A DNA stretch of 64,000 bases from assembly GCA_040285825.1 (NCBI GenBank), contig JAUPSS010000001.1:806001-870000 (forward strand), in the 5' to 3' direction. Within the stretch, counting starts at the first letter, position 1. Each line of letters starts with the position of its first letter. The notes under the pieces were generated by a model. That model did not search any database. It worked only from the letters and a program-made list of their open reading frames with translations, and was not told where the DNA came from. The translations under genes were made by a program, and so were the position numbers. Below are positions 17,701 to 58,349 of the stretch, one piece after another. The DNA is from Eukaryota sp. TZLM1-RC. Its lineage: Eukaryota > Protista > Metamonada: BaSk clade.

Positions 17701-18817
17701 ATTAGACAAGGTCTTAAAAGCGGTAACAAAAACTTTTCAATTTTAAAAGCGATGGGAGAAACTTCATCTTCAGTTTCGGGGCAGTATAAGCTCAAGTCAA
17801 GGGGATTGGCCATGGACCTATAGAGGCAAAATATGGCTAAAATGGGGAAACTGAAGTGAAAAAGGAAAGAGTTGGATGTGCAAGACACTCCGAAAAATTC
17901 GTAAAATTCTGGCCATGAAGAATGGAGATCAGGATAGAGATCACATAAAGAAGACAACAAAATTTTGGAAACAACCCCAAACACTAACCCCAACAGAACC
18001 AACCAAACAAGTTTTTTCCGATGTCTCCAATGATGAGAACTAAGAAAGCCTAAACAGGAAGCTCCTAGAATAATAGAAAAAGGATCTCTTATAGATAGAA
18101 TAGATACCCAAGCAAACACTACTGCCACTGTATGCATGAAAGCTGGGCCAAGTAGTTGGAATTGCGATGTAAATAAAGCAATCACAGGCGACGTGATTGA
18201 TGGGGAAGGTGATTTGATGAAGGAGGTAGAAATGATTAATTGAATAACCAAAGGTAATAAAAATTAAAGCATGCTCTAGACAAAAAAACAGAGTCACAAT
18301 GGTTGAGTGAGGGTAATGCAAATATTTTAAATATGGGACTTTTAATAAAATCTTGAGGCAATGCTATTGATAAATAAGTAATTGTTAATCGAGTTATTGT
18401 TAAAATTGAGCTTATTAGATAAAGCAGCTTCCTACTAGTTCCGTTTGTGTGTTTGATTAGAGTTAAATCAAAAATACAAATTATTAACGGTATTAGATTT
18501 AAAATATATGGTTGGAATGTTGAAATTACTAGAATGAAAACGACTAAATTTTTGATAATTGAAGGTCTTGAAAGGGAAATGAAGCGCTGATTAAAGTCAA
18601 TTCCCTTAAGAAAAACAAAAGATAATATTGGAAAAATAAGAAAAACAAATCGATCAAATAAAAGGTCAAAATGATAACGTGAGATCACGTCAACATAATG
18701 AGCTGGGAGAAGTGTGGATAAATAATCCATTACTGGGGTGTATTGGATTATAAATAAACTAGCAATGACCAAAACCAAACTGGAAAATCCGATAAAGTCA
18801 ATTAAAGAATTTCCAGA
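14701..18817 (-). pseudogene. PIEZO: Piezo mechanosensitive channel, 5'-truncated and frameshifted copy
   Basis: PFLYEMKCLLDW (PFxxE-x6-W signature), GLYLSIVIGVGRFVR, LPNVDKLLEICEDLFLAR...IYRDPDTLIELT, and many TM segments. Split into four ORFs and cut at 18817. Confidence 0.9.
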
Positions 18818-25200: not shown

Positions 25201-25678
25201 AATTACCCATAAAGGAGAATTCCATTTTGCATCCCGCTCATCATATCACAAACAAGACATTACCCCATTGGTTGCCCTAACTTTTGAGAGACAAACAAAG
25301 GCATTGGGTAGAGCATATTTGGAAGATGAAGCTTATTCATAAATGTTTATTTCATTAATAAATTGAATTTCTATAATTGAACATCATACAATGCTTCACT
25401 GAACTTGAATTATGTCTTTACGCCCAAGATCACCATTATGAATACAACTGTCTAATATCAATTTTTCCTGTCAAAGTAGTTACACCAACATCCACACAGC
25501 AGAGATAACTCTATGATGGCGATTTGATCAATTCCTAGAGTATGTGTACCTCAAAATATCAAAACCCATTAGAATGGTTTATGCCATTATCCTATATATA
25601 TTAATGCGAGTGTGAGTGGGTGTTATATTCAATTAGTCTTTTCATAAAATAAATAACAGTGGTTTGATTGAATTCCTC

Positions 25679-26413
25679 ATGAAACTAACTGTTATAGGCC
25701 ACTGGGCAGGATATCCTAAAGCTAATGACGCTACCTCTGGTTATTTGCTCCAGCACGATGGTTTCAATGTTCTTATTGATTGTGGTAGTGGTGTATTGTC
25801 CAACATGTTGCACTTCGTTTCTTACACCGAACTGCATGCAGTTGTCATCTCCCACTACCACCATGATCATATTGCTGACGTAGGTCCACTACAATACGCT
25901 AGGCTAGTGGAAACACAGCTAGGCAAGGTGAATTCTCAACTCAAAGTATATGGCCCATCGTATGATCAGGATACACTGTCAAAGTTAAAGAAACCTCCAT
26001 TTGTTGACACTGTTCCATATGACCCGCAAAGCCGAAAAACAATAGGTCCATTTGAGTTGGAATTTCATGAAAATATCCACTCAATTAAATCATTTGCCAT
26101 TAAGGCTACTTGTGGATCCAAATCAGTAGCTTATTCAGGAGACACTGCCTATCATGAGACATTGGCAGAGTTTGTGAGTGATGTAGATTTGTTCATTTGC
26201 GAGGCGAGCTTCTATCCTTGGCAAGATGCAGTGCCTTATGGACACTTAACAAGTACAGAAGCAGCGAGAATTGCTCAAAAAGCGTCAGTAAATCATCTTT
26301 TACTTACACATTTACCTGACTTCGGAAATGTAAACGAGTTGCTTGAGGATGCTAAGAAACATTTCGAACAGAGAACGAGTCTGGCATTCAAAGGGTGGTG
26401 TTGTGAGATATAG
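25679..26413 (+). CDS. Bacterial-type MBL-fold metallo-hydrolase (short RNase Z / Bacillus YhfI-like)
   Basis: LIDCGSG, SHYHHDH (HxHxDH), YSGDT, DLFICEA, GH, LLTH. ATG at 25679, no introns. Confidence 0.88.
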   Translation: MKLTVIGHWAGYPKANDATSGYLLQHDGFNVLIDCGSGVLSNMLHFVSYTELHAVVISHYHHDHIADVGPLQYARLVETQLGKVNSQLKVYGPSYDQDTLSKLKKPPFVDTVPYDPQSRKTIGPFELEFHENIHSIKSFAIKATCGSKSVAYSGDTAYHETLAEFVSDVDLFICEASFYPWQDAVPYGHLTSTEAARIAQKASVNHLLLTHLPDFGNVNELLEDAKKHFEQRTSLAFKGWCCEI

Positions 26414-26582: not shown

Positions 26583-29500
26583 TTATAAGTCAAGTTTGAG
26601 ACAACTTTTGACAATTTTCTTCAAAAAAGATTTCTTGACAAATTCAGGATCTTGGTTGACATTCCAATGCCCGTACTTTCTATAACAAGAAGGGTCGTTT
26701 TTCCTATCACACTTGTCGCCAAACTTGCACTTATAAGGAATCACTGGTATAGGTTCATGGAAAAAAGTGAAGCGATGAAGAGGATCCTTAAGACCTTCAC
26801 AACTTACCCCATGTTCACATACTTCCAGCTCAACGTGGTCAAATAGTCTGCAGTGTTCCTCGTTTTCCACATCTTTACAAAATCCTGAATATCGACATAT
26901 ATGTTTAAACCCCCTTAAATGCTTGGCTCCCTCGGAGGTCTTTCCCATATGATCCACATAGTAATACTCGCAGGTATAAGGATTAGGACATTGGGGTAGT
27001 TCAGAGTTTATGCTAGCAGCACTTTTAGTAATAGAGGAAGATCTTGGTTTTTGAAACGATTTTGTGGATGTAAAATGTTGAAAAAATGTTCGATGAGATA
27101 GTGAAGCCAACTGGTTACAATTTTTAAAGGGGCAACGTGGAACATGGTGAAATTTTGAAATATGATCTCTTTCATCAACACGTTTGCAGGGAAAGAGCAA
27201 ATCTTGACATGGAAGCATAAAATTTCGAGAATTTTGAATTAAATCGTATTTAATTAAATCTTGGCATTGAGCTAGACAATCCCCAAATCCACTAAATATA
27301 ATTGAATCAAAAAACTTGTGGAAAATGGAAAGTACAAATGATAAAACAGTCATTGCACCAGGAATAGGGTTTTTGAAAGCTCCACAACCAAGAGGGCAAA
27401 TCACTAAATGAGTAATTCTGTGTTTAATGGCAGCTAAAAAGACACAAGTCCATCTCTTGTATAGTAATTGCAAATCATCAAAATGAGCATAGTCTTCACC
27501 AAAGTTTTCAACTTCCTTTCTTTGTGGATTTTGAGGAGCAGCAGTACTTATAATGGTAACTCTTTGTGGTGTTTCAAGCAATTGACATCCAGTAGCTTCC
27601 GTTATTTCAAAATTTCCACATTTTCGGTAACTACAACATCAATTTTAGCTGTTTTCCATGGATATGTTACCCTTTGGCCAGAAACTACCTGTCCACCATA
27701 CTGTTCAGGATCCAAAGCAGCACCTAGAGTTGTTCTTCTGAAAAGTGATTCTTCTTGAGCACTGGCACCCGTGAGATAACCACCACCAGGATGTTCCTCA
27801 TTAGCCATGTTGAGGACACCAACACGGTTAGTGGTAGGATCAAGGCCAATCGCACATTCAAGACAGTCTTTTTCCAAAAACTCGATCGGTTTAACATCAT
27901 TAGTTGCAACAAAATCAAAATCATGATTAAAAAAATCGTCAAAAAAATGGACAGAATTACATAGCAAATTACAATTCAATCTAGTAAAGGATTCACCATT
28001 CAGAGCATAACCATTGGCATTCACGACTCTCAAAGCATGAGCTAATATGATGCACAACACAAGCCTATAACAGTTGTTGAATCTTCGTCTAAGAGAGGGA
28101 AGGTCATAGGAATTGATTAGGAAATGGATTAATTGATCATTGTAATTTTCGACTAAATTTCCATAGTAATGCAGAGCCAAATCAACATGGGCCTTTTCTT
28201 CGGCAAAACAAACAGGATACGCAAGAGCAGGATTGAATTCCTCAACCAAAACTAATGTAATTTCTCTATTTTTCCCTTTAATTCTACAATTAAAAATCGT
28301 ACCTCTTTTTAGAACACATTCATCCTCTGTGCTGACCAGAACAACTCTTCTATCCCCAAACAAAGTGATTTTGTGCTTTGTGGAAGTGAGGCTCTGGTCA
28401 ATGACGTGTTTCAGAGTTGAGAAATTTGGACAAGGAATGAAGACTAGTTCGAATAAATAGAATTCATTAAAAGAAATTCTAAAATTTTGGTTGGAAGTTT
28501 CAATTTATTGAATGATCTCTGATTGATCTTCTTTTGAAAAGACCAAATATTCGAACAATGAAATGTCAGCCAATATTTGGTCATTTAGATAGATTGTCTG
28601 TGAATTCGGTAATAGTTGAGCCAAATTTTCGTCAATAACAGAATGATTAATTGGTGATCCATCTTCGACAACGACTGTGATCGACGTCAAGGCTAAAATT
28701 TTAGAAGTTTGATCTCTTCCCCTGCTCTTGAGCTCTACTATTTCCTTTTGCTTATCCATTAATTTTTGTTTCAATTTTTGAATCAATTGATTGTTTTTTT
28801 CATTATTATTGACCGCCAACTGATCACTGTTAGTTGACATTTCTGAAATTTCTGCCTTTAAACCCAAAACTTCCGTTTCCAAATTTTCAATGATTTCCGA
28901 TCGGTCGGCTACACAATTTTTCAAAGAGTCAATGATAGCAACAAATTCTTCATTAATTTCTTTAATTTTCCCATATTGCCCTTCTTATTCATCATGAGAG
29001 TCAGAAAGATCCTTGAAAGCTGATTCTGATTGGTTCAAGGAAACAGAAAGTGATTTAATAACTGATGAATAATTGGTAGATTTTTCGGAGAGATCACAAA
29101 AAAGATCATAAAGCTCATTGAAAGAAGTTGAAAATGTTTTGAATTCTGAACGTTGTGACTGAATGGTTTCCTCTAACTGAGTAATTTTTGACTCCAATTC
29201 AACAATTAACGTAGACTTAAATTGAATTTCTGTATTCAATTCAGCAATCAAGTCTTGATTATTCTTGATTGATTGACAATTTGATTGATTCTCGGTTGAT
29301 AATTCCGAATTACTGGCTTTAAGTGACATAATCTCTGATTCCAGTGATTCTTTTTCAGACGTTAGAGATTTGATTTGAGTAGTTAATTCAGCAATTGATG
29401 AATTTAATTCTGCAAATTTAGAACTTTTCATCAATAATTCTTGATTCTTTGAATTAATTTCAGCATCTTTTTCTTTTAATAATTCAATTTTATCACCATT

Positions 29501-30741: not shown

Positions 30742-33700
30742 ATGGTTAAGCCCGTACTTCCGTCACTTCTACTACCTGCTACCTTGTTCGTTTGTCTTTT
30801 ATCTAGACAATCTTATTTCTTATTTGCTTTTGTTCCTTCGCTTTTTCTTGCTATTAAGCTTCCGAATCAGAAATAGCCCCCGCTGCTCTCTTTTGCATTA
30901 TCCTTTCTTGGTTTAGTCGCTTCTGCAGTAATCATTCCATTTGACCTCCCCCTTCTTCAGTCTTTATATATAGGTACTTGTTCTGATTCACTATGTATAC
31001 CACCATTTGCGTACTATGGTTCACTTGTTTTCTTGTTATTCATCTATCTTCGACTGCAACCTTCTTCATGCACGCTCTCCTCACATGTCCCTCTCCTGTC
31101 CAATGTTTTATCTCAAAACCATTCTCATCCTACTTTCCTTCTCTTTCGTCCCCACACCCACCTACTTCGTCTTCTTCACCCTCATATCGCTTGTTTTGTC
31201 ATCTCCAACTTCTCCTCTCCTCTCCCACAACCTCTACCATAAGATCTTCTCCATTTGTTCATTTTCCCACCTCTACTACATTCTTCTCTCCTCTACTCTC
31301 TCCCTTCCTTACTTTCATGATCCATCTACTCTTCTTCCACTTCCTGTGTCTTTCTTCTCCACACTACACATTCTTACCCTAATTCTCTCCATTTATCTTC
31401 ACTCATCCCCTTACTTTTTCTCTCCACATCACCGTATTCCCCAAGCAGATAGTGTTGAACCTAGTCTAATCTCTCTTTCTTTTGTTCCTGACACAACTGC
31501 TTCTATTAGTGTAGCATCTGTAATTTCTTTTTTCTCATGTGGATTAGTATTAATTGCTACCTTCTTTTACCCTTCACCTTGGCTGATTCCGTTGCTGATA
31601 TATGGAATGATTCTGATTATTTTTAAATTAAGAACTTGTGGTTTTAAACGAGGTTATAGAGTTTTATTGTTTTCTATTATTTCAATTAATTTAACATTTA
31701 TTTCTTTTTCTAAACAACCAAGACGTGACCAAGATGTGACGTTGACGTATCTACTGATCAGAAACTTGATGAAGAGGTCACACCAGATCAAGATGACACG
31801 TCTGAGCCTCAACCATCATTTTTACTTCGAATGGCAACCAAACTTCAGTCAATCATTTTGAACTTCTTCAATATCAACATTTCTGACCTACCACCACGTC
31901 ATCAAACGTCACCATTACGTTGGTTAAAGCACAATATCTATAGATACTCTTCTGTATTGTCTTGCTTGCTGTGCTATCTCGCTGCTTTGTGGTTTCCTTC
32001 AATTCCCACCGTGATGATTGCTTTCACCACGATCACTTTTGGTTTAATGTCCAAATATGGAGGCAAAGCTAGGTTTTGGCAGTTTATTTTGGGAATTTAT
32101 CTATCTTTATTATTAATCCATTACATTTTCACCTTTCCTTTCTTTTGTTTTTGTGTTTCGCCATCAGATTCAATTACCATTTCCCTTGGTAAGTCATGTC
32201 TAGATCCCACCAAGTGTCCTGTTCCAAGGGAGCTTATCGATCCATCAAGTCACCCCTCAGCCCTAAGTTCGCAACTCATTTACCTTGTTGGTATTGCTCC
32301 TATAGGCAGCTTCCTCTTCTCCTACCCTCCCTTGCTGATTGCTGCATTGGGTATCGTTCTTCATCGTTCTATCTCGTTTAGAATGGGCAGGTGGGGAATT
32401 GATGTAGAGGAGAGAGTTGGGGTTCGTCATGTTTGGGGTAGGGTCGTGGTCTTCTTCAAGACTCTAATGGAGAAGCGTTTCGACGCTATTGGAGTAGACC
32501 TCTACCCATTTATGTTTTTTATTGATATACTTCAGTTAATTGCGCTTCCATTTGCCTTTTTTAGTAGCTCAACAGCTTCCCAGTCGGTAATCCAATCAGT
32601 CCAGCTCAGTTATTTACCTGGTTTCCTTGCAATTTGGTTGATTGTTCAGTTTCTGTTAATCATTATTGATAGAACTCTTTTCTATTTGAGATTCGCAAGA
32701 CTCAAAGCTCTGGTTCATTTTATTTCTAATTTCACTGTGTTAATTGTTTTTTGTTTAATTTTCCCCCGCAGTAATCACGAATTACCAATTAATGCACCTT
32801 TTCTCCTAGTCGCGGCCTTTCTGCGGTTTGTGGCTGCCGTGTTGAGCTCTCTACAACTTCGTTTTGGTTTTCCACCGCCTTCCTCCAAAGCCTTTTTGAT
32901 GAAGTCTTACGGTTCTTTTAACAATTATGGATACCAAGCCTTTAGAGTCATTCCTTTTCTTTATGAAATGAAATGTTTGCTGGATTGGTCTTTGACTACT
33001 ACTGCTTTGGAATTTAATTACTGGATGCGAATAGAAGATATTTATTCATCGTTGTTTTTAATCAAATGCAGAAGGTTATCTACAGCGAAAAGAGGTCGAA
33101 ATTTTGGTGACCCACAACCAAAATTTGACAAATTTTCGCAAGGTTTTCTTTTGTTTTTCGGTCTTACGCTCTTATTATGTTTGCCCTTAATTTTATTTAG
33201 TTCTGCTAACCCAGTCTCCAAACCAAACCCTATCCAACAGGCCAGTATTGATGTAAGTTTCAATAACTACTTGCCCATTTTCTCTCAGCATGAAGTGCAC
33301 AAAGTCGATGTTATCCCGGCTACACAATACAATGCAATTGTTAGCCATCACTCCTTGCTCCGCGATTCTAACCGTGCAGATGTACGAAAGATTACCTTTT
33401 TCACTTCATCTGATTCTGTGTGGACCATTGCTCCTCCTGCCATGAACGGGCTAGTAGAAGCTTTGGAGGATGGAAGGGGAATAGTATCTGTTACTTTGTC
33501 GTTTAACAGACACTATCCAAGCGATAGGAGGACAGCAAAGGGATGGTACTCGTTCAATTTAGATCATGAACATTGCTTAGAGTTGGCCAAGTTATTTTCT
33601 GGTGATTTAGAAGAAGTAACAATACCTTTACTTCCAAGAGCTGCATTAATTCCTCTGGCCGAATCACCAATCTTTTCTGATCAACGGGAGGATACCCTCA

Positions 33701-34080
33701 TTCAGCGTAGAGAGCGTGACGGACAGACTTATTGGTTGATCAAGGATGCTGATTCAAGAGAACCATTCTATATGTATACTTATAGTTTAGAATCGACCGC
33801 TGCACTTGGTGCTTATGCCAGCGGGGGTTTGATTGGATTGTATCTATCAATTGTGATTGGTGTTGGTAGGTTTGTTCGACTTTCATTTTCGGACAGCAAG
33901 TCCCAAATTTTTGTTTCGGCTCTCCCAAATGTGGATAAATTACTTGAAATCTGTGAGGATTTGTTCCTGGCCAGGAGTATCTCAGATTTGGTCCTTGAAG
34001 AATCAATTTACAAGGAAATCATTCAGATATATAGAGATCCAGATACTTTGATTGAATTAACCACACCACCAGTTAAATAG
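30742..34080 (+). pseudogene. PIEZO: Piezo copy with an internal deletion of about 2.4 kb; the C-terminal 749-aa ORF 31831..34080 (pore module) is open
   Basis: Piezo-like N-terminus MVKPVL.SLLLPATL from ATG 30742, with an in-frame TAG near 30874. Deletion junction at about 31720-31740. Piezo signature and C-terminus are intact. Confidence 0.88.
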
Positions 34081-36731: not shown

Positions 36732-39605
36732 ATGCTCTCGTGTCCACATTGTTCAATGGATTTCAACGAAGAGTCTCGTGTGCCACTGGTAGTTTGCAGT
36801 CAGCGCCATAGTGTATGCGGTGTATGTTCTGATGCTGTGGAATCCTGTCCGATCTGCAATGAAGATATCCTGCCGTCACCGGAAGTCAACCTCAGTTTGC
36901 GCGATATAGCCAAAGCTTCTTGCAAGGAGGACCTCTGTGTACACATTCCCTCTAACCAGGTCAAACTTTTGCACATGATTGGACAAGGAGGATATGCACA
37001 GGTGTTTGCCGCTTCTTGGTTTGATTCAGACGTCGCCGCCAAGACTGTTGCTCTCACAGAAGAAGGTAAGAAACGACTGAGGAAAGAGATTGGTATTATG
37101 GCCAAGATTGATCATCCCTTTATCCTCCGCGTTTTTGGTCTGGTCAGCTTAATGGACAGACTCGCCATAATTATGGAACTTGCTGAAGGTTCTCTGTCAG
37201 TGCCGTCAAGATTGACTAAACAAAGTCTCTTGTTTGCCAAGAAGATCTGCCAGGCAGTCCGTTTCCTGCACTCCAAATCACTTGCACATGGAGATCTCAA
37301 GCCCGAAAACATTCTTTTTGTCAATGGGCAAATCAAATTAGCCGATTTTGGAACATCCAGGACTGTTGCCAAGACTTCCACGGCTACCAATCTATCATGT
37401 ACAGCACGGTATGCAGCCTTGGAACAGTTTGAGAACAAATTGTCTCTTGCCTCAGACATCTATGCAATTGGAATCATCCTTTGTGAGTTACTTTGTAATT
37501 ATAGGCCATTTGTCAATATGGATCAGATTGCCATAATGGGAGCTAAGTATTTTAAGACACCATTTGCTTTGGGTGAACACGTTCCCAGTGTGCTCAAAGA
37601 ATTAATCGCCCAATGTTGCTCTTCAGATCCAGCTGCCAGACCAAGTATTGCTCAAGTTCTTGTAGTTTTGGATCAATTGGATGACTTTGCTGAAGAAGGT
37701 GATGAAAATCCTGTTAGTATTAATAATGATGTTCAAACGCAACTGCAATCTGCCAACTCTACAATCGAGTCTCTACGAAAGAATGTTACTGATTTGGAGG
37801 CTTCCAGTCAACAACTCACCAACGATTTGACAGAACGGGATTCCAGAATTGCCCGGTTGGAAGAAGAAAGGGCCGGTATCAATGCCTCCAATCAACACCT
37901 CAGTCAATCTTTGGAAGAACGTGATGCTAGAATTGCCACTATGGAAGAAGCTTTAAATGCCAGCAAGGCCGGTATTGCCGAGAAAGATACAGAAAATGCC
38001 AACCTTAGATCTACCATTGATGAATTGGAAAAGCAAAATACTCTACTCAGTAGAACTAATTCTGATTTAGCAAGCAAAATTGCTGACCTTGAAGCGTTGT
38101 TGAGAGAGTGCCATTGTAATCAATCTTTGAACAATATCGATGATCATCATCCTCCATCTAAGGAAGAAATTTTGGAAGACATCAAGTCGAATGTAAATTG
38201 GAATGGATTGGGTGATGGAGTGAAGAAGGGTGTTGAGGACTTGGTTGATGGTTCCATCACTAAATTGGATCTTCAGTTCAACAACATTACCTCTGAAGGC
38301 GCTAGTGCTCTCGCCCGTGCTCTGGAGAGCAATTCCTCTCTGACTTTATTGAATCTTGAGTGCAACAACATTACCGATGAAGGCGCTAGTGCTCTCGCCC
38401 GTGCTCTGGAGAGAAATTCCACTCTGACTACATTGGTTCTTTGGAACAACAACATTACCTCTGAAGGCGCTAGTGCTCTCACCCGTGCCCTGGAGAGCAA
38501 TTCCACTCTGACTACATTGCATCTTTGGGAAAACAACATTGCCTCTGAAGGCGCTAGTGCTCTCGCCCGTGCTCTGGAGAGCAATTCCACTCTGACTAAA
38601 TTGGGTCTTCAGTACAACAACATTACCGATGAAGGCGCTAGTGCACTCGCCCGTGCTATGGAGAGAAATTCCACTCTGACTGAATTGAATCTTGTGAACA
38701 ACAACATTACCTCTGAAGGCGCTAGTGCTCTCGCCCGTGCTCTGGAGAGCAATTCCACTCTGACTAAATTGACTCTTGGGTACAACAAAATTACCGATGA
38801 AGGCGCTAGTGCTCTGGTGAACAACTCCTCTTTGACTACTTTGTATCTTAACTCCAACAACATCACCTCTGAAGGCGCTAGTGCTCTCGCCCGTGCTCTG
38901 GAGAGCAATTCCACTCTGACTGCATTGGATCTTAACTCCAACAACATTACCTCTGAAGGCGCTAGTGCTCTCGCCCGTGCTCTGGAGAGCAATTCCACTC
39001 TGACTGAATTGGATCTTCGGTGCAACAAAATTACCTCTGAAGGCGCTAGTGCTCTCGCCCGTGCCCTGGAGAGCAATTCCACTCTGACTACATTGCATCT
39101 TTGGGAAAACAACATTGCCTCTGAAGGCGCTAGTGCTCTCGCCCGTGCTCTGGAGAGCAATTCCACTCTGACTAAATTGGGTCTTCAGCAGAACAACATT
39201 ACCGATGAAGGCGCTAGTGCTCTCGCCCGTGCTCTGGAGAGCAATTCCACTCTGACTAAATTGGGTCTTGTGAACAACAACATTACCTCTGAAGGCGCTA
39301 GTGCACTCGCCCGTGCTATGGAGAGAAATTCCACTCTGACTGAATTGACTCTTGGGTACAACAAAATTACCGATGAAGGCGCTAGTGCTCTCGCCCGTGC
39401 TCTGGTGAACAACTCCTCTTTGACTACTTTGTATCTTAACTCCAACAACATCACCTCTGAAGGCGCTAGTGCTCTCGCCCATGCTCTGGAGAGCAATTCC
39501 ACTCTGACTGAATTGAATCTTGGGTACAACAAAATTAGCAATTCAACCAAATCCAAACTTCGACAAGTAGCATCTAATCGTCCTTCTCTCCGAATTTTCG
39601 TTTAA
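36732..39605 (+). CDS. RING-like zinc finger, TKL-like kinase (non-RD, HGD), coiled coil, 16 RI-like LRRs
   Basis: Intact 957-aa ORF with the same motifs as 9837..12047. AATAAA follows the stop. Confidence 0.93.
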   Translation: MLSCPHCSMDFNEESRVPLVVCSQRHSVCGVCSDAVESCPICNEDILPSPEVNLSLRDIAKASCKEDLCVHIPSNQVKLLHMIGQGGYAQVFAASWFDSDVAAKTVALTEEGKKRLRKEIGIMAKIDHPFILRVFGLVSLMDRLAIIMELAEGSLSVPSRLTKQSLLFAKKICQAVRFLHSKSLAHGDLKPENILFVNGQIKLADFGTSRTVAKTSTATNLSCTARYAALEQFENKLSLASDIYAIGIILCELLCNYRPFVNMDQIAIMGAKYFKTPFALGEHVPSVLKELIAQCCSSDPAARPSIAQVLVVLDQLDDFAEEGDENPVSINNDVQTQLQSANSTIESLRKNVTDLEASSQQLTNDLTERDSRIARLEEERAGINASNQHLSQSLEERDARIATMEEALNASKAGIAEKDTENANLRSTIDELEKQNTLLSRTNSDLASKIADLEALLRECHCNQSLNNIDDHHPPSKEEILEDIKSNVNWNGLGDGVKKGVEDLVDGSITKLDLQFNNITSEGASALARALESNSSLTLLNLECNNITDEGASALARALERNSTLTTLVLWNNNITSEGASALTRALESNSTLTTLHLWENNIASEGASALARALESNSTLTKLGLQYNNITDEGASALARAMERNSTLTELNLVNNNITSEGASALARALESNSTLTKLTLGYNKITDEGASALVNNSSLTTLYLNSNNITSEGASALARALESNSTLTALDLNSNNITSEGASALARALESNSTLTELDLRCNKITSEGASALARALESNSTLTTLHLWENNIASEGASALARALESNSTLTKLGLQQNNITDEGASALARALESNSTLTKLGLVNNNITSEGASALARAMERNSTLTELTLGYNKITDEGASALARALVNNSSLTTLYLNSNNITSEGASALAHALESNSTLTELNLGYNKISNSTKSKLRQVASNRPSLRIFV
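38250..39542 (+). repeat. 84-bp coding tandem repeat (LRR array, 16 units, one with a 12-bp in-frame deletion)
   Basis: Read directly. Unit 7 lacks ARAL near 38810. Confidence 0.95.
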
Positions 39606-39714: not shown

Positions 39715-39849
39715 TGCCAACATCGTAGTCCAGTGGGTTTGCTCTTCGTTCTCTGCTTTGGCAACAGGGTTCGAATCCTATCTTCTGCACTTCTGGCAAA
39801 AGGGGACCCCAAAGTGGGAGCCAGCATTTCCTTTCCCACTTTCCGGGTC
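39715..39849 (+). other. GC-rich structured element with tRNA-like Pol III A/B boxes (candidate SINE head or ncRNA)
   Basis: A-box-like TAGTCCAGTGG at 39726-39736, B box GGTTCGAATCC at 39768-39778, hairpin at 39805-39849. No complete cloverleaf. Confidence 0.4.
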
Positions 39850-39949
39850 TGACTGCATGGTGCTTGATCAATGAGGGTGATTCTGAAGATTGGGCATTTT
39901 AGGTTTTTGTGGATCTTGATTTTGCATGTTATTCGCACAAATTTCCTTT

Positions 39950-41726: not shown

Positions 41727-42204
41727 AATTACCCATAAAGGAGAATTCCATTTTGCATCCCGCTCATCTTATCACAAACAAGACATTACCCCATTGGTTG
41801 CCCTAACTTTTGAGAGACAAACAAAGGCATTGGGTAGAGTATATTTGGAAGCTGAAACTTATTCATAAATGTTTATTTCATTAATAAATTGAATTTCTAT
41901 AATTGAATATCATACAATGCTTCACTGAACTTGAATTATGTCTTTACACCCAATATCACCATTATAAATACAACTGTCTAATATCAATTTTTCCTGTCAA
42001 AGTAGTTATACCAACATCCACACAGCAGAGATAACTCTGTGATGGCGATTTGATCAATTCCTAGAGTATGTGTACCTCAAAATATCAAAACCCATTAGAA
42101 TGGTTTATGCCATTATCCTATATATATTAATGCGAGTGTGAGTGGGTGTTATATTCAATTAGTCTTTTCATAAAATAAATAACAGTGGTTTGATTGAATT
42201 CCTC

Positions 42205-42939
42205 ATGAAACTAACTGTTATAGGCCACTGGGCAGGATATCCTAAAGCTAATGACGCTACCTCTGGTTATTTGCTCCAGCACGATGGTTTCAATGTTCTT
42301 ATTGATTGTGGTAGTGGTGTATTGTCCAACATGTTGCACTTCGTTTCTTACACCGAACTGCATGCAGTTGTCATCTCCCACTACCACCATGATCATATTG
42401 CTGACGTAGGTCCACTACAATACGCTAGGCTAGTGGAAACACAGCTAGGCAAGGTGAATTCTCCACTCAAAGTATATGGCCCATCGTATGATCAGGATAC
42501 ACTGTCAAAGTTGAAGAAACCTCCATTTGTTGACACTGTTCCATATGACCCGCAAAGCCGAAAAACAATAGGTCCGTTTGAGTTGGAATTTCATGAAAAT
42601 ATCCACTCAATTAAATCATTTGCCATTAAGGCTACTTGTGGATCCAAATCAGTAGCTTATTCAGGAGACACTGCCTATCATGAGACATTGGCAGAGTTTG
42701 TGAGTGATGTAGATTTGTTCATTTGCGAGGCGAGCTTCTATCCTTGGCAAGATGCAGTGCCTCATGGACACTTAACAAGTACAGAAGCAGCGAGAATTGC
42801 TCAAAAAGCGTCAGTAAATCATCTTTTACTTACACATTTGCCTCACTTCGGAAATCTAAACGAGTTGCTTGAGGATGCTAAGAAACATTTCGAACAGAGA
42901 ACGAGTCTGGCATTCAAAGGGTGGTGTTGTGAGATATAG
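42205..42939 (+). CDS. Bacterial-type MBL-fold metallo-hydrolase, copy 2
   Basis: Intact ORF with the HxHxDH motif. Four residues differ from copy 1. Confidence 0.88.
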   Translation: MKLTVIGHWAGYPKANDATSGYLLQHDGFNVLIDCGSGVLSNMLHFVSYTELHAVVISHYHHDHIADVGPLQYARLVETQLGKVNSPLKVYGPSYDQDTLSKLKKPPFVDTVPYDPQSRKTIGPFELEFHENIHSIKSFAIKATCGSKSVAYSGDTAYHETLAEFVSDVDLFICEASFYPWQDAVPHGHLTSTEAARIAQKASVNHLLLTHLPHFGNLNELLEDAKKHFEQRTSLAFKGWCCEI

Positions 42940-43126: not shown

Positions 43127-46100
43127 TTATAAGTCAAGTTTGAGACAACTTTTGACAATTTTCTTCAAAATAGATTTCTTGACAAATTCAGGATCTTGGT
43201 TGACATTCCAATGCCCATATTTTCTATAACAAGAAGGGTCGTTTTTCCTATCACACTTGTCGCCAAACTTGCACTTATAAGGAATCACTGGTATAGGTTC
43301 ATGGGAAAAAGTGAAGCGATGGAGAGCATCCTTAAGACCTTCGCAACTTACCCCATGTTCACATACTTCCAGCTCAACGTGGTCAAATAGTCTGCAGTGT
43401 TCCTCGTTTTCCACATCTTTACAAAATCCTGAATATCGACATATATGTTTAAACCCCCTTAAATGCTTGGCTCCCTCGGAGGTCTTTCCCATATGATCCA
43501 CATAGTAATACTCGCAGGTATAAGGATTAGGACATTGGGGTAGTTCAGAGTTTATATTAGGAGCACTTTTAGTAATAGAGGAAGATCTTGGTTTTTGAAA
43601 CGATTTTGTGGATGTAAAATGTTGAAAAAATGTTCGATGGGATAGTGAAGCCAACTGGTTACAATTTTTAAAGGGGCAACGTGGAACATGGTGAAATTTT
43701 GAAATATGATCTCTTTCATCAACACGTTGACAGGGAAAGAGCAAATCATGACATGGAAGCATAAAATTTCGAGAATTTTGAATTAAATCGTATTTAATTA
43801 AATCTTGGCATTGTGCTAGACAATCCCCAAATCCACTCAATATAATTGAATCAAAAAACTTGTGGAAAATGGAAAGTACAAATGATAAAACAGTCATTGC
43901 ACCAGGAATAGGGTTTTTGAAAGCTCCACAACCAAGAGGGCAAATCACTAAATGAGTAATTATGTGTTTAATGGCAGCTAAAAAGACACAAGTCCATCTC
44001 TTGTATAGTAATTGCAAATCATCAAAATGAGCATAGTCTTCACCAAAGTTTTCAACTTCCTTTTTTTGTGGATTTTGAGGAGCAGCAGTACTTGTAATGG
44101 TAACTCTTTGTGGTGTTTCAAGCAATTGACATCCAGTAGCTTCCGTTGTTTTCAAAATTTCCACATTTTCGGTAACTACAACATCAATTTTAGCTGTTTT
44201 CCATGGATATGTTACCCTTTGGCCAGAAACTACCTGTCCACCATACTGTTCAGGATCCAAAGCAGCACCTAGAGTTGTTCTTCTGAAAAGTGATTCTTCT
44301 TGAGCACTGGCACCCGTGAGATAACCACCACCAGGATGTTCCTCATTAGCCATGTTGAGGACACCAACACGGTTAGTGGTAGGATCAAGGCCAATCGCAC
44401 ATTCAAGACAGTCTTTTTCCAAAAACTCGATCGGTTTAACATCATTAGTTGCAACAAAATCAAAATCATGATTAAAAAAATCGTCAAAAAAATGGACAGA
44501 ATTACATAGCAAATTACAATTCAATCTAGTAAAGGATTCACCATTCAGAGCATTACCATTGGCATTCACGACTCTCAAAGCATGAGCTAATATGATGCAC
44601 AACACAAGCCTATAACAGTTGTTGAATCTTCGTCTAAGAGAGGGAAGGTCATAGGAATTGATTAGGAAATGGATTAATTGATCATTGTAATTTTCGACTA
44701 AATTTCCATAGTAATGCAGAGCCAAATCAACATGGGCCTTTTCTTCGGCAAAAGAAACAGGATACGCAAGAGCAGGATTGAATTCCTCAACCAAAACTAA
44801 TGTAATTTCTCTATTTTTCCCTTTAATTCTACAATTAAAAATCGTACCTCTTTTTAGAACACATTCATCCTCTGTGCTGACCAGAACAACTCTTCTATCC
44901 CCAAACAAAGTGATCTTGTGCTTTGTGGAAGTGAGGCTCTGGTCAATGACGTGTTTCAGAGTTGAGAAATTTGGACAAGGAATGAAGACTAGTTCGAATA
45001 AATAGAATTCATTAAAAGAAATTCTAAAATTTTGGTTGGAAGTGTCAATTGATTGAATGATCTCTGATTGATCTTCTTTTGAAAAGACCAAATATTCGAA
45101 CAATGAAATGTCAGCCAATATTTGGTCATTTAGATAGATTGTCTGTGAATTCGGTAATAGTTGAGCCAAATTTTCGTCAATAACAGAATGATTAATTGGT
45201 GATCCATCTTCGACAACGACTGTGATCGACGTCAAGGCTAAAATTTTAGAAGTTTGATCTCTTCCCCTGCTCTTGAGCTCTACTATTTCCTTTTGCTTAT
45301 CCATTAATTTTTGTTTCAATTTTTGAATCAATTGATTGTTTTTTTCATTATTATTGACCGCCAACTGATCACTGTTAGTGGACACTTCTGAAATTTCTGC
45401 CTTTAAACCCAAAACTTCCTTTTCCAAATTTTCAATGATTTCCGATCGGTCGACTACACAATTTTTCAAAGAGTCAATGATAGCAACAAATTCTTCATTA
45501 ATTTCTTTAATTTTCCCATATTGCCCTTCTAATTCATCATGAGAGTCAGAAAGATCCTTGAAAGCTGATTTTGATTGGTTCAAGGAAACAGAAAGTGATT
45601 TAATAACTGATGAATAATTGGTAGATTTTTCGGAGAGATCACAAAAAAGATCATAAAGCTCATTGAAAGAAGTTGAAAATGTTTTGAATTCTGAACGTTG
45701 TGACTGAATGGTTTCCTCTAACTGAGTAATTTTTGACTCCAATTCAACAATTAACGTAGACTTAAATTGAATTTCTGTATTCAATTCAGCAATCAAGTCT
45801 TGATTATTCTTGATTGATTGACAATTTGATTGATTCTCGGTTGATAATTCCGAATTACTGGCTTTAAGTGACATAATCTCTGATTCCAGTGATTCTTTTT
45901 CAGACGTTAGAGATTTGATTTGAGTAGTTAATTCAGCAATTGATGAATTTAATTCTGCAAATTTAGAACTTTTCATCAATAATTCTTGATTCTTTGAATT
46001 AATTTCAGCATCTTTTTCTTTTAATAATTCAATTTTATCACCATTATCTTTTTCATTTTTCTTAATTTCTTCTTTTAATTCACTATTCAACAGACCCAAC

Positions 46101-46339
46101 TCATCTAATGCACTTGATAATTCATTATTTTTACTGTTAATTAAGGTGATTTCATCTTTTAACTCAGTAATGATTGAGTTTAACTGTTCCTTTTCCAGAA
46201 TTAATTCCTTTTCACTCTCCGAGTTACTACTAATTTTTGCTTTAATTTGATCCAATTCAAGTTCTCTTTCGGATATAACACTACCTAATTTTTCTTTTTC
46301 TAGCACAACCAAGTAATAATTTGTTTCTAATCTAACCAA
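43127..46339 (-). CDS. Coiled coil, microbial-type PARG (DUF2263-like macrodomain), six PBZ-like zinc fingers; 5' end truncated or uncertain
   Basis: VLNMANEEHPGGGYLTGASAQEESLFRRTTL (GGG-x7-QEE catalytic loop), AAP, LGCGAFKNP, and C-x5-C-x7-H-x5-H repeats. The frame continues upstream past a TAA at 46418 to 46843, where a retroelement tail cuts it. Confidence 0.8.
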   Translation of the reverse strand: MVRLETNYYLVVLEKEKLGSVISERELELDQIKAKISSNSESEKELILEKEQLNSIITELKDEITLINSKNNELSSALDELGLLNSELKEEIKKNEKDNGDKIELLKEKDAEINSKNQELLMKSSKFAELNSSIAELTTQIKSLTSEKESLESEIMSLKASNSELSTENQSNCQSIKNNQDLIAELNTEIQFKSTLIVELESKITQLEETIQSQRSEFKTFSTSFNELYDLFCDLSEKSTNYSSVIKSLSVSLNQSKSAFKDLSDSHDELEGQYGKIKEINEEFVAIIDSLKNCVVDRSEIIENLEKEVLGLKAEISEVSTNSDQLAVNNNEKNNQLIQKLKQKLMDKQKEIVELKSRGRDQTSKILALTSITVVVEDGSPINHSVIDENLAQLLPNSQTIYLNDQILADISLFEYLVFSKEDQSEIIQSIDTSNQNFRISFNEFYLFELVFIPCPNFSTLKHVIDQSLTSTKHKITLFGDRRVVLVSTEDECVLKRGTIFNCRIKGKNREITLVLVEEFNPALAYPVSFAEEKAHVDLALHYYGNLVENYNDQLIHFLINSYDLPSLRRRFNNCYRLVLCIILAHALRVVNANGNALNGESFTRLNCNLLCNSVHFFDDFFNHDFDFVATNDVKPIEFLEKDCLECAIGLDPTTNRVGVLNMANEEHPGGGYLTGASAQEESLFRRTTLGAALDPEQYGGQVVSGQRVTYPWKTAKIDVVVTENVEILKTTEATGCQLLETPQRVTITSTAAPQNPQKKEVENFGEDYAHFDDLQLLYKRWTCVFLAAIKHIITHLVICPLGCGAFKNPIPGAMTVLSFVLSIFHKFFDSIILSGFGDCLAQCQDLIKYDLIQNSRNFMLPCHDLLFPCQRVDERDHISKFHHVPRCPFKNCNQLASLSHRTFFQHFTSTKSFQKPRSSSITKSAPNINSELPQCPNPYTCEYYYVDHMGKTSEGAKHLRGFKHICRYSGFCKDVENEEHCRLFDHVELEVCEHGVSCEGLKDALHRFTFSHEPIPVIPYKCKFGDKCDRKNDPSCYRKYGHWNVNQDPEFVKKSILKKIVKSCLKLDL

Positions 46340-49044: not shown

Positions 49045-52000
49045 ATGGTTAAGCCCGTACTTTCGTCACTTCTACTACCTGCTACCTTGTTCGTTTGTCT
49101 TTTATCTAGACAATCTTATTTCTTATTTGCTTTTGTTCCTTCGCTTTTTCTTGCTATTAAGCTTCCGAATCAGAAATAGCCCCCGCTGCTCTCTTTTGCA
49201 TTATCCTTTCTTGGTTTAGTCGCTTCTGCAGTAATCATTCCATTTGACCTCCCCCTTCTTCAGTCTTTATATATAGGTACTTGTTCTGATTCACTATGTA
49301 TACCACCATTTGCGTACTATGGTTCACTTGTTTTCTTGTTATTCATCTATCTTCGACTGCAACCTTCTTCATGCACGCTCTCCTCACATGTCCCTCTCCT
49401 GTCCAATGTTTTATCTCAAAACCATTCTCATCCTACTTTCCTTCTCTTTCGTCCCCACACCCACCTACTTCGTCTTCTTCACCCTCATATCGCTTGTTTT
49501 GTCATCTCCAACTTCTCCTCTCCTCTCCCACAACCTCTACCATAAGATCTTCTCCATTTGTTCATTTTCCCACCTCTACTACATTCTTCTCTCCTCTACT
49601 CTCTCCCTTCCTTACTTTCATGATCCATCTACTCTTCTTCCACTTCCTGTGTCTTTCTTCTCCACACTACACATTCTTACCCTAATTCTCTCCATTTATC
49701 TTCACTCATCCCCTTACTTTTTCTCTCCACATCACCGTATTCCCCAAGCAGATAGTGTTGAACCTAGTCTAATCTCTCTTTCTTTTGTTCCTGACACAAC
49801 TGCTTCTATTAGTGTAGCATCTGTAATTTCTTTTTTCTCATGTGGATTAGTATTAATTGCTACCTTCTTTTACCCTTCACCTTGGCTGATTCCGTTGCTG
49901 ATATATGGAATGATTCTGATTATTTTTAAATTAAGAACTTGTGGTTTTAAACCAGGTTATAGAGTTTTATTATTTTCTATTATTTCAATTAATTTAACAT
50001 TTATTTCTTTTTCTAAACAACCAAGAGCTGTGACGTTACTTTCAGCAGCTTTCTTTCTATTTTTGAACCCTTTTGGTCTATTGGTGACGTTTTCGCCACG
50101 TCAGCATAGGTACTTTTTGAAATTTTTGAGAATTATTTACACAATTGACCACTCTATTATTGTTTTTACTGCTTCTTTATTAATCACCTTAAATTTACCT
50201 ACAGTTCCATTTATTTTACTATTCTTATTATCAGTTCATTATATTCTTCATCCTTTATCATCAAATAAAAAAATTACAAATTTGGTGTTATTTATTTCTT
50301 TTGGTTTTGTTTTACTATTTTATTCCACTTTCTCTTCCTTTATTTCCTCAATCTGTGATTCTCAATTCGCAATTGTGTTGGGCGTTTGTCAGACCCAATC
50401 TTATTATTATTCAGTTATTATCTTTATTTTTAATTTCTTCTTTATCTCATTTAAATTATTTACTAAGAAGAATAGATGGTGAAAGTAGAACCTCTTTGTC
50501 TTTTCAATCTCCTTTATTCTTAAAATTCAAATCAGTAATTGGAGTTTGCTTTATCAGCATATACTTGTTATTTAGAGTTTGTTTATTGGAAATTGTTATA
50601 TTAGCAATCTTTGTGGTTATTGTTTTACTCCCAATTGTTGGAATTCGAAATTCTTTAATTGACTTTATCGGATTTTCCAGTTTGGTTTTGGTCATTGCTA
50701 GTTTATTTATAATCCAATACACCCCAGTAATGGATTATTTATCCACACTTCTCCCAGCTCATTATGTTGACGTGATATCACGTTATCATTTTGACCTTTT
50801 ATTTGATTGATTTGTTTTTCTTATTTTTCCAGTATTATCTTTTGTTTTTCTTAAGGGAATTGACTTTAATCAGCGCTTCATTTCCCTTTCAAGACCTTCA
50901 ATTATCAAAAATTTAGTCGTTTTCATTCTAGTAATTTCAACATTCCAACCATATATTTTAAATCTAATACCGTTAATAATTTGTATTTTTGATTTAACTC
51001 TAATCAAACACACAAACGGAACTAGTAGGAAGCTGCTTTATCTAATAACCTCAATTTTAACAATAACTCGATTAACAATTACTTATTTATCAATAGCATT
51101 GCCTCAAGATTTTATTAAAAGTCCCATATTTAAAATATTTGCATTACCCTCACTCAACCATTGTGACTCTGTTTTTGTCTAGAGCATGCTTTAATTTTAT
51201 TACCTTTGGTTATTCAATTAATCATTTCTACCTCCTTCATCAAATCACCTTCCCCATCAATCACGTCACCTGTGATTGCTTTATTTACATCGCAATTCCA
51301 ACTACTTGGCCCAGCTTTCATGCATACAGTGGCAGTAGTGTTTGCTTGGGTATCTATTCTATCTATAAGAGATCCTTTTTCTATTATTCTAGGAGCTTCC
51401 TGTTTAGGCTTTCTTAGTTCTCATCATTGGAGACATCGGAAAAAACTTGTTTGGTTGGTTCTGTTGGGGTTAGTGTTTGGGGTTGTTTCCAAAATTTTGT
51501 TGTCTTCTTTATGTGATCTCTATCCTGATCTCCATTCTTCATGGCCAAAAATTTACGAATTTTTCGGAGTGTCTTGCACATCCAACTCTTTCCTTTTTCA
51601 CTTCAGTTTCCCCATTTTAGCCATATTTTGCCTCTATAGGTCCATGGCCAATCCCCTTGACTTGAGCTTATACTGCCCCGAAACTGAAGATGAAGTTTCT
51701 CCCATCGCTTTTAAAATTGAAAAGTTTTTGTTACCGCTTTTAAGACCTTGTCTAATTATTTTATTGTTCTTTATCGGTGTTCAACGTGCATCTGTTCCTG
51801 CTTTGCTTTACGTAATTGTAGCACTTTGGTTGGTATATTCGGACTCTGTTTTTACTGAGCTGAAAAGGGCAAAAACTTTCACGTTTTGTTTGTATATTTT
51901 AAACTGCTCTGTTTTGATTTCACAATCAATATTTCAGTTGAGCTTTTTCAGTGAATCTTCTGATCTCTTCTCGATCTCTTCTATTCTAGGTCTAGATCAA

Positions 52001-54756
52001 TACCATTCTTACTACTCGGCGCTCAAATTATCAGCTTCACTTTTGGATTTCATTGTCCACGGCATCTCTTCTTCTTTGGATGTATTGGTTTACTCTGCTT
52101 CCTTTAAAAGATATCTTTCTTCAGTTAAAACCAGCAGAGATTTGGCCATCCAACGAGTCTTGGATGATGAAAAGTTAAGTAAGCTTAGGCGGGAAAGGAT
52201 TTTAAAGCAACAGTTAACAGAGAAGGAAGCTACTGAAAGCAGATTGGAAATGTTAAAGTCCAAAAGACTTGGTAAAAGAGATACATCAGCTCGTCAAATA
52301 TTTGAAGAAGAGATCAAAGCACATCAGGACGTTTTAAGTGACTTGTCAAGTAGTGCAGAAGAGATCAAAAAGGATCATGATGACCTGTCAGGTCAAGAGA
52401 AGTCAAGTGACGTTGACGTATCTACTGATCAGAAACTTGATGAAGAGGTCACACCCGATCAAGATGACACGTCTGAACCTCAACCATCATTTTTACTTCG
52501 AATGGCAACCAAACTTCAGTCAATCATTTTGAACTTCTTCAATATCAACATTTCTGACCTACCACCACGTCATCAAACGTCACCATTACGTTGGTTAAAG
52601 CACAATATCTATAGATACTCTTCTGTATTGTCTTGCTTGCTGTGCTATCTCGCTGCCTTGTGGTTTCCTTCAATTCCCACCGTGATGATTGCTTTCACCA
52701 CGATCACTTTTGGTTTAATGTCCAAATATGGAGGCAAAGCTAGGTTTTGGCAGTTTATTTTGGGAATTTATCTATCTTTATTATTAATCCACTACATTTT
52801 CACCTTTCCTTTCTTTTGTTTTTGCGTTTCGCCATCAGATTCAATTACCATTTCCTTTGGTAAGTCATGTCTAGATCCCACCAAGTGTCCTGTTCCAAGG
52901 GAGCTTATCGATCCATCCAGTCACCCCTCAGCCCTAAGTTCACAACTCATTTACCTTGTTGGTATTGCTCCTATTGGTAGCTTCCTCTTCTCCTACCCTC
53001 CCTTGCTGATTGCTGCATTGGGTATCGTTCTTCATCGTTCTATCTCGTTTAGAATGGGCAGGTGGGGAATTGATGTAGAGGAGAGAGTTGGGGTTCGTCA
53101 TGTTTGGGGAAGGGTCGTGGTCTTCTTCAAGACTCTAATGGAGAAGCGTTTCGACGCTATTGGAGTAGACCTCTACCCATTTATGTTTTTTATTGATATA
53201 CTTCAGCTAATTGCGCTTCCATTTGCCTTTTTTAGTAGCTCAACAGCTTCCCAGTCAGTAATCCAATCAGTCCAGCTCAGTTATTTACCTGGTTTCCTTG
53301 CAATTTGGTTGATTGTTCAGTTTCTGTTAATCATTATTGATAGAACTCTTTTCTATTTGAGATTCGCAAGACTCAAAGCTCTGGTTCATTTCATTTCTAA
53401 TTTCACTGTGTTAATTGTTTTTTGTTTAATTTTCCCCCGCAGTAATCACGAATTACCAATTAATGCACCTTTTCTCCTAGTCGCGGCATTTCTGCGGTTT
53501 GTGGCTGCCGTGTTGAGCTCTCTACAGCTTCGTTTTGGTTTTCCGCCACCTTCTTCCAAAGCCTTTTTGATGAAGTCTTACGGTTCTTTTAATAATTATG
53601 GATACCAAGCATTTAGAGTCATTCCTTTTCTTTATGAAATGAAATGTTTGTTGGATTGGTCTTTGACTACTACTGCATTGGAATTTAGTTACTGGATGCG
53701 AATAGAAGATATTTATTCATCGTTATTCTTAATCAAATGCAGAAGGTTATCTACAGCGAAAAGGGGTCGAAATTTTGGTTGTGGGTCGCCAAATTTGGTT
53801 GTGACAAATTTTCGCAAGGATTTCTTTTGTTTTTCGGTCTTACGCTATTATTATGTTTGCCTTTAATTTTATTTAGTTCTGCTAACCCAGTCTCCAAACC
53901 AAACCCTATCCAACAGGCCAGTATTGATGTAAGTTTCAATAACTACTTGCCCATTTTCTCTCAGCATGAAGTGCACAAAGTCGATGTTATCCCGGCTACA
54001 CAATACAATGCAATTGTTAGCCATCACTCCTTGCTCCGCGATTCTAACCGTGCAGATGTAAGAAAGATTACCTTTTTCACTTCATCTGATTCTGTGTGGA
54101 CCATTGCTCCTCCTGCCATGAACGGGCTAGTAGAAGCTTTGGAGGATGGAAGGGGAATAGTGTCTGTTACTTTGTCGTTTAACAGACACTATCCAAGCGA
54201 TAGGAGGACAGCAAAGGGATGGTACTCGTTCAATTTAGATCATGAACATTGTTTAGAGTTGGCCAAGTTATTTTCTGGTGATTTAGAAGAAGTAATAATA
54301 CCTTTACTTCCAAGAGCTGCATTAATTCCTCTGGCCGAATCACCAATCTTTTCTGATCAACGTGAGGATACTCTCATTCAGCGTAGAGAGCGTGACGGAC
54401 AGACTTATTGGTTGATCAAGGATGCTGATTCAAGAGAACCATTCTATATGTATACTTATAGTTTAGAATCGACCGCTGCACTTGGTGCTTATGCCAGCGG
54501 GGGTTTGATTGGATTGTATCTATCAATTGTGATTGGTGTTGGTAGGTTTGTTCGACTTTCATTTTCGGACAGCAAATCCCAAAATTTTGTTTCGGCTCTC
54601 CCAAATGTGGATAAATTACTTGAAATCTGTGAGGATTTGTTCCTGGCCAGGAGTATCTCAGATTTGGTGCTTGAAGAATCAATTTACAAGGAAATCATTC
54701 AGATATATAGAGATCCAGATACTTTGATTGAATTAACCACACCACCAGTTAAATAG
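49045..54756 (+). pseudogene. PIEZO: Full-span Piezo gene (about 1900 codons) with stops, frameshifts and a micro-inversion
   Basis: ATG 49045 MVKPVLSSLLLPATLFVCLLSR, TAG near 49177, TGA at 50808, several frameshifts, and a rearrangement at 53770-53805. Piezo signature and C-terminus present. Confidence 0.88.
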
Positions 54757-57428: not shown

Positions 57429-58349
57429 ATGCTCTCGTGTCCACATTGTTCAATGGATTTCAACGAAGAGTCTCGTGTGCCACTGGTAGTTTGCAGTCAG
57501 CGCCATAGTGTATGCGGTGTATGCTCTGATGCTGTGGAATCCTGTCCGATATGCAATGAAGATATCCTGCCGTCACCGGAAGTCAACATCAGTTTGCGCG
57601 ATATAGCCAAAGCTTCTTGCAAGGAGGACCTCTGTGTACACATTCCCTCTAACCAGGTCAAACTTTTGCACATGATTGGTCAAGGAGGATATGCCCAGGT
57701 GTTTACTGCTTCTTGGTTTGATTCAGACGTCGCCGCCAAGACTGTTGCTCTCACAGAAGAAGGTAAGAAACGACTGAGGAAAGAGATTGGTATTATGGCC
57801 AAGATTGATCATCCCTTTATCCTCCGCGTTTTTGGTCTGGTCAGCTTAATGGACAGACTCGCCATAATTATGGAACTTGCTGAAGGATCTCTGCCAGTGC
57901 CGTCAAGATTGACTAAACAAAGTCTCTTGTTTGCAAAAAGGATCTGTCAGGCAGTCCGTTTTCTGCACTCCAAATCACTTGTGCATAGAGATCTCAAGCC
58001 CGAGAACATTCTTTTTGTCAATGGGCAAATCAAATTAGCCGATTTTGGAACATCCAGGACTGTTGCCAAGACTTCCACGGCTACCAATCTATCATGTACA
58101 GCACGGTATGCAGCCTTGGAACAGTTTGAGAACAAATTGTCTCTTGCCTCAGACATCTATGCAATTGGAATCATCCTTTGTGAGTTACTTTGTAATTATA
58201 GACCATTTGTCAATATGGATCAGATTGCCATAATGGGAGCTAAGTATTTTAAGACACCATTTGCTTTGGGTGAACACGTTCCCAGTGTGCTCAAAGAATT
58301 AATCGCCCAATGTTGCTCTTCAGATCCAGCTGCCAGACCAAGTGTTTGA
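57429..58349 (+). CDS. Truncated zinc finger-kinase copy (RD type, HRDLKPEN) with no coiled coil or LRR
   Basis: Homology to 36732.. ends at 58342, just after kinase subdomain XI (AARPS), and a stop follows at once. Confidence 0.7.
   Translation: MLSCPHCSMDFNEESRVPLVVCSQRHSVCGVCSDAVESCPICNEDILPSPEVNISLRDIAKASCKEDLCVHIPSNQVKLLHMIGQGGYAQVFTASWFDSDVAAKTVALTEEGKKRLRKEIGIMAKIDHPFILRVFGLVSLMDRLAIIMELAEGSLPVPSRLTKQSLLFAKRICQAVRFLHSKSLVHRDLKPENILFVNGQIKLADFGTSRTVAKTSTATNLSCTARYAALEQFENKLSLASDIYAIGIILCELLCNYRPFVNMDQIAIMGAKYFKTPFALGEHVPSVLKELIAQCCSSDPAARPSV

Follow-up and report, generated by a model that had tools for sequence, protein, structure and literature searches.

The hypervariable leucine-rich repeat (LRR) genes analysed here very probably encode a candidate recognition receptor whose repeats are subject to both concerted evolution and diversifying selection, with no need for a special mutagenic machine. 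The window, that is the whole stretch of 64,000 nucleotides that was analysed, comes from Eukaryota sp. TZLM1-RC (assembly GCA_040285825.1). Skoliomonas litria, whose type isolate this is, is a soda-lake flagellate and a free-living anaerobic metamonad (PMC11603281). In a preliminary description of the window, four codons of the repeat were seen to change at positions 1 and 2 while position 3 was nearly fixed, and two explanations were offered, strong diversifying selection combined with homogenising conversion or an undescribed site-directed mutagenic mechanism. The first is supported by the codon network, the residue preferences of LRRs, simulations and linkage, and is sufficient.

The window is a patchwork of recent segmental duplications whose relevant features are listed in Table 1. 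Pfam did not call a RING in gene A itself; zf-C3HC4/zf-RING_2 was called in the paralogues P0006, P0017 and P0042. The gene A kinase has HGD, i.e. it is non-RD, a trait common among immune kinases. HGD was found in all LRR-bearing copies examined and HRD in the third kinase copy, downstream of which the sequence is unique in the data examined. The RING-kinase-coiled coil-LRR genes are a young family, and their proteins are probably cytosolic. Judged by its domains the protein is not an NLR, since no Pfam match to NACHT or NB-ARC was obtained in gene A, gene B or the paralogues. The kinases of genes A and B differ in 5/245 codons, yet the two genes have no identical LRR units in common. Over the coiled coil and linker (37719-38255) they show 20 replacement versus 9 silent codon differences, and over the zinc finger and kinase 3 replacement versus 5 silent ones. 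A literature search found no mention of RING-kinase-LRR genes in the genome paper.

Table 1. Features of the window, with positions counted from its first nucleotide.
Feature	Position	Strand	Basis or remark
Gene A, 957 aa	36732-39605	+	Single open frame: RING-type zinc finger, kinase, coiled coil, 16 LRR units
Gene A, C3HC4 RING-like cysteine pattern (aa 4-42)	36741-36857	+	Seen in sequence
Gene A, protein kinase (aa 78-310)	36963-37661	+	Pfam Pkinase, E 1e-44; glycine loop, VAAK, HGDLKPEN and DFG motifs
Gene A, coiled-coil region (about aa 330-460)	37719-38111	+	Weak coiled-coil Pfam matches; limits approximate
Gene A, LRR array, 16 RI-type units of 84 bp	38256-39537	+	Unit 7 short by 12 bp; unit 16 is a terminal cap
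Gene A, internal block duplication	38508-39503	+	Units 4-8 resemble 11-15; sub-unit tract of private variants moved by one unit
tRNA-like A/B-box segment and hairpin behind gene A	39716-39850	+	
Gene B, 736 aa paralogue	9837-12047	-	8 LRR units (array 9904-10523)
tRNA-like A/B-box segment and hairpin behind gene B	9642-9727	-	
Third kinase copy, without LRR	57429-58349	+	Stop at aa 306, the kinase end; HRD in place of HGD
Non-LTR retroelement	4260-7658	-	Zinc knuckle, reverse transcriptase (5729-7132), endonuclease-like ORF; frames broken

Within the LRR unit the hypervariable codons are codons 3, 5, 7 and 8 (offsets +6, +12, +18 and +21), here called sites 1-4. Codons 10, 13 and 25 also vary, less so than these. 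The earlier third-base counts are exact over the 24 units of the window (gene A 16, gene B 8), with A in 22/24 at site 1, T in 24/24 at site 2, G in 18/24 at site 3 and C in 21/24 at site 4. Site 2 does encode seven amino acids (Y, D, N, G, H, T and V), TTG, CTT and the following AAC are invariant in 24/24 units, and the reported S/D/A site (TCT/GAT/GCT) is codon 13. These 24 units are not independent, as gene A contains the duplicated block and gene B two identical pairs, and they carry 20 distinct four-site haplotypes. The sample was taken as the window plus DNA fetched around 11 paralogues (L001-L011), altogether 140 units in 14 arrays of 5 to 17 units on three contigs. Of these units, 109 belong to 12 arrays on this contig; the other 31 belong to two RCC1-LRR genes, which lie on other contigs. 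In the pooled units the third base was A in 138/140 at site 1, T in 138/140 at site 2, G in 108/140 at site 3 and C in 117/140 at site 4. All 14 arrays are in frame, and the 140 units contain no stop codon. A metagenome scan for the pattern gave no match. Of the third-base changes possible at the variable codons, about half are silent and up to 17% introduce a stop. The appropriate null therefore combines selection with the genetic code and does not assume random bases. Against this null the third-base fixity is not significant.

Position 3 of the variable codons is not specially protected. Among the 109 units, replacement steps at positions 1, 2 and 3 numbered 15, 21 and 11 (n = 47); the expectation for position 3 was 8.6. 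The window on its own had 1/21 steps at position 3, compared with 2.4 expected. At the variable codons, silent changes keep to the background rate, with 3 per 2.15 sites compared with 16 per 17.35 sites in the framework. Position 3 also varies where this changes the residue, as in codon 10, AAC/AAA (Asn/Lys), in 24/140 units, and in codon 25, AGC/AGA/AGG. In the minimum network of the 109 units all 54 codons at the four sites are joined by single-base steps without gaps, and for each of the three apparent double-base changes of the window there are intermediates in the paralogues. Random codon sets of the same make-up were connected in 29-60% of trials. With so weak a null, single-step connectivity was dropped from proof to a consistency check.

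Replacement diversity at the four sites is high. By a counting method, piN was 0.53 at the variable codons against a framework piS of 0.039; piS ranged from 0.04 to 0.08, and replacement diversity was 7-14 times the silent diversity of the same units. The same amino acid has its own third base at each site because each site descends from one founder codon. Gly is GGA at site 1, GGT at site 2, GGG at site 3 and GGC at site 4; Asn is encoded by AAT at site 2 and by AAC at site 4. This also rules out genome-wide codon bias. Residue preferences were taken from 739 distinct LRR motifs of unrelated proteins, mostly coral NLRs. At site 2 of these motifs N, D, Y and H make up 76%, and E, K and Q about 1% each; at site 1, D makes up 2% and N 1%. 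Judging from these motifs, at the sites with the most fixed third base LRRs in general disfavour the residues that a change there would bring in. Long antisense ORFs lie over both arrays, at 38346-39482 (-) and 9943-10533 (+), and were read as repeat shadows. Constraint from the first, of 378 aa, was rejected as a cause of the pattern, since it is in register with the sense frame and would constrain position 2 too; it owes its open frame solely to the absence of TTA, CTA and TCA from the unit.

Units are exchanged within and between genes. Across the 14 arrays, which represent three contigs and two domain architectures, framework identity to one reference unit is 0.91-1.0, and units are more than 85% identical both within and between genes. 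Linkage (r2) is 0.24 within 1-2 bp, 0.04 at 3-6 bp and 0.014, the background, beyond. All four gametes occur in 166/231 column pairs, a count to which recurrent mutation could add. The 109 units carry 86 different four-residue combinations. Alleles at the variable sites are at intermediate frequency, and silent variants are mostly singletons. Mosaic units are visible in gene A; the main caveat is that the Nanopore (MinION) assembly was polished with Illumina short reads, which could create some mosaics and singletons. Both repeat-number variation and exchange were seen between paralogues of one strain. The RCC1-LRR genes (L010 on contig 11 and L011 on contig 7) share both the 84-bp unit and the 3' flank with the RING-kinase genes; array and flank have thus moved together between domain architectures. 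L011 has ten nearly identical LRR units in a row.

A predicted model of the LRR part of gene A (pLDDT 82.6) resembles the ribonuclease inhibitor fold, an RI-type horseshoe, with a TM of about 0.8. Sites 1-3 lie on the beta-strand and site 4 just after it. The beta-strand side of such folds is the concave binding face (PMC3341825), so in the model the four variable sites are solvent-exposed on the putative binding face. The closest protein relatives of the LRR part are coral NLRC3-like proteins, with about 50-57% identity.

Coalescent and forward simulations were run, both without targeted mutation. Coalescent runs combined point mutation with raised replacement rates and were matched to the amino-acid diversity that was observed. 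In these, fixity equal to or above that of the data had a P of 0.11-0.75 per site in the window and mostly of 0.05-0.5 in the pooled units. If the genealogy is of the Kingman type and amino-acid preference is flat, the pooled units lean to excess fixity (P 0.05-0.14 per site). These low values stem from the Kingman genealogy, which the silent sites reject (pi/theta 0.18). A forward model with point mutation, conversion and frequency-dependent diversifying selection, and with no targeted mutation, gave P 0.2-0.9 per site for third-base fixity once diversity was matched, the samples within a run being correlated. With conversion tracts of 15-40 bp it produced inter-site linkage of 0.03-0.05, compared with 0.035 observed, and 52-84 haplotypes, compared with 75 observed. 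Under flat preference and stronger selection, forward runs overshot the diversity and the third base ceased to be fixed (0.55-0.8). A good fit therefore requires moderate selection, residue preferences or a young family. The best-fitting runs also under-produce rare variants, with 3-9 silent variants where 15 were seen. Within the models, mutation, conversion and selection are sufficient, which is not proof.

The proposed course of events has four steps. The arrays show the first, in which units are copied and exchanged within and between genes, whole or in sub-unit pieces, and form one shared pool. This keeps the framework and silent sites near-identical and shuffles the variable codons. In the second, which is visible as a pattern, a single-base mutation of the ordinary kind is retained and spreads if it alters the residue at one of the four exposed codons, whereas silent ones stay rare. 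By the logic of the code each site then retains the third base with which its founder codon began, since any change of that base is silent, creates a stop or brings in a residue rare there in LRRs. Finally, the selective agent may be a variable ligand bound on the concave face, e.g. prey or parasite molecules or a non-self marker, and a cytosolic sensor may signal through its kinase or RING domain. The LRR family is thus put forward as a candidate non-self or pathogen sensor. To our knowledge no immune receptors have been described in the Skoliomonas lineage.

The closest parallel in mode of evolution is the Podospora HNWD family (het-e, het-d), in which concerted evolution goes together with diversifying selection on four codons of each WD unit (PMC1805685; PMC4986451). 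Both families have near-identical units within and between genes, varying unit number and four diversified binding-surface codons that flank a conserved one. Skoliomonas differs in that the units are 28-aa LRRs, the N-terminus is RING, kinase and coiled coil with no NACHT/NB-ARC, and the host is a unicellular metamonad. No incompatibility phenotype is known for the Skoliomonas LRR genes, and no LRR was found in fungal NLRs (Dyrka 2014, PMC4986451). The HNWD mode of receptor evolution would act here on LRR units in a free-living anaerobic metamonad, a new lineage and a new architecture, with near-free shuffling of codons only 3-6 bp apart. The ROCO and LRR-kinase genes of Ectocarpus also combine selected concave-face residues and inter-locus shuffling with a signalling domain, and are proposed receptors (Zambounis 2012, PMC3341825). 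In Ectocarpus each LRR is one exon (PMC3341825), whereas the Skoliomonas array is one uninterrupted frame with exchange below unit length and no Roc-COR. Coral NLRC3-like and ribonuclease inhibitor-type LRRs, compared at the protein level, have the same fold and similar residue preferences at sites 1, 2 and 4; the coral proteins carry NACHT domains and the Skoliomonas proteins do not.

In lamprey variable lymphocyte receptors, LRR diversity is copied from related cassettes and concentrated on the concave face. Their assembly is somatic and programmed and draws on non-coding cassettes. By contrast, all Skoliomonas units found lie in coding, complete genes, and no non-coding donor cassettes were found in about 310 kb (the window and 11 loci). 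A programmed diversifier that rewrites the four codons, or shuffles them through very short conversion tracts, quickly enough for clone-mates to have different receptors is very improbable. If real, it would be an adaptive-immunity-like system in a unicellular eukaryote.

An unknown site-directed mutator, such as a deaminase or error-prone repair, could also act within cell lineages, with selection only filtering its products. It would fit the combination of very high replacement diversity with a silent divergence of only about 0.04 in the family, the mild excess of third-base fixity under some genealogies, and the rare variants, which exceed those of the simulations. Yet the variable sites and the framework have one and the same substitution spectrum, the third positions of these codons mutate no faster or slower than the background, and no change is seen in the bases that separate the sites. 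A mutator would thus need single-base aim coinciding with the reading frame. The lack of stop codons also speaks against it. A deaminase in particular was rejected, as there is no transition excess (ts:tv 16:31 at variable sites versus 10:18 for framework replacements) and no deaminase-like motif in the window and 11 loci (~310 kb). We consider such a mutator very unlikely.

Relaxed constraint alone, with the four residues drifting neutrally while the rest of the unit is under purifying selection, is highly unlikely. The positions are indeed solvent-exposed and variable in all LRRs. However, drift cannot give the observed ratio of replacement to silent diversity, which refutes this explanation unless silent sites are strongly constrained, and it leaves the intermediate-frequency alleles unexplained where silent variants are mostly singletons. 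Just as doubtful is an assembly artefact, in which polishing of noisy long reads in near-identical repeats made the variation or the mosaics. The sequencing strategy and the many frameshifted ORFs nearby would favour it, but all 14 arrays are in frame, and errors would not pick out positions 1-2 of four codons. Contigs from a separate public run, which may not be independent of the culture, show six listed differences from the gene A array, each of them on the first or second base of site 2, 3 or 4.

The mechanism named in the preliminary description as giving a similar pattern, mutagenic retrohoming of the diversity-generating retroelement (DGR) type, would reverse transcribe an A-rich template RNA with errors at A and write the product into the units. 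The likeness to DGRs of the Bordetella phage BPP-1 type (PMC7826257) lies in variable residues on a binding surface and in a superficial NNY pattern at two of four sites, since site 2 (mainly NAT) and site 4 (NNC) look like AAY-derived codons. Positions 1 and 2 of site 2 are statistically independent (p 0.16), reverse transcriptase (RT) elements are common near kinase-LRR genes, and a hairpin lies behind each LRR array. Against this, variation is not confined to adenine positions, and silent adenines are fixed: the third base of site 1 hardly varies, and among 126 units GAG never appears at codon 14. Silent T positions are likewise fixed, which argues against an antisense template too. In DGRs about 52% of template adenines are misread (PMC7826257), and A would then be expected to persist in about half of the units; at site 3 the first base is A in only 12/140 and AAG was never seen. 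Strong dependence between positions 1 and 2 was found at sites 1, 3 and 4, in units that are not independent. A search for a template-like non-coding unit in the window and 11 loci (about 310 kb) found none. One 26-bp LRR-unit fragment (25/26 identical), which lacks the variable codons, lies outside the arrays at L010:8937-8962, ~1 kb upstream of the RCC1-LRR gene.

The RT points the same way. DGR RTs carry [I/V/L]GxxxSQ and non-LTR RTs QGxxxSP-like motifs (PMC7826257). The RT near the LRR genes has QGDPLGP and YMDD, its best PDB matches are R2 and LINE-1, and a general Pfam scan of 20 window ORFs gave no Avd match. Tested as the diversifier, this retroelement was rejected. From its motifs we take the RT to be CRE/SLACS-like. 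A DGR-like origin is thus extremely unlikely, and neither it nor another site-directed mutagenesis is supported. The refuting outcome that the preliminary description set for a dedicated mechanism was largely obtained, through the intermediates for the window's double-base changes, the lack of a template in about 310 kb and the non-LTR RT with its QG motif. NNY-like codons in a homogenised repeat are no evidence for a DGR, which removes a tempting false lead; the founder third base, silent adenines and position-3 replacements serve as tests that tell a DGR from ordinary evolution. As for the locus being rich in RT elements, the window holds one element with RT ORFs, plus fragments. The retroelement sits in a copy of a sequence also found about 430 bp behind LRR genes, and insertion into this repeated target accounts for the proximity with no need for a mechanistic link to the repeats. 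It has an A-rich 3' end, and its insertion is possibly site-specific. L009 contains an RT 94% identical to that of the window.

The tRNA-like segment occurs once behind each of the 14 arrays, including those of the RCC1-LRR genes, and nowhere else in ~310 kb. It starts about 110 bp after the stop codon of every array and looks better conserved than the 110 bp before it. ARAGORN and Rfam made no call for it, and its fold z is -0.3 to -1.9. It was rejected as a unit template, having no likeness to LRR units, and as a SINE with a LINE-derived tail, the sequence in common being the insertion target of the retroelement and not a tail.

Other genes recur in the duplicated blocks. These are Piezo genes in pieces (14701-18778, 31007-34080 and 49310-54756), metallo-beta-lactamase-fold genes (25664-26413 and 42190-42939), with an Apyc1-like Pfam match in paralogous loci, and microbial-type PARG genes (27602-28363 and 43127-46339). 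They repeatedly adjoin kinase-LRR genes, with which they possibly form a defence-related cluster.
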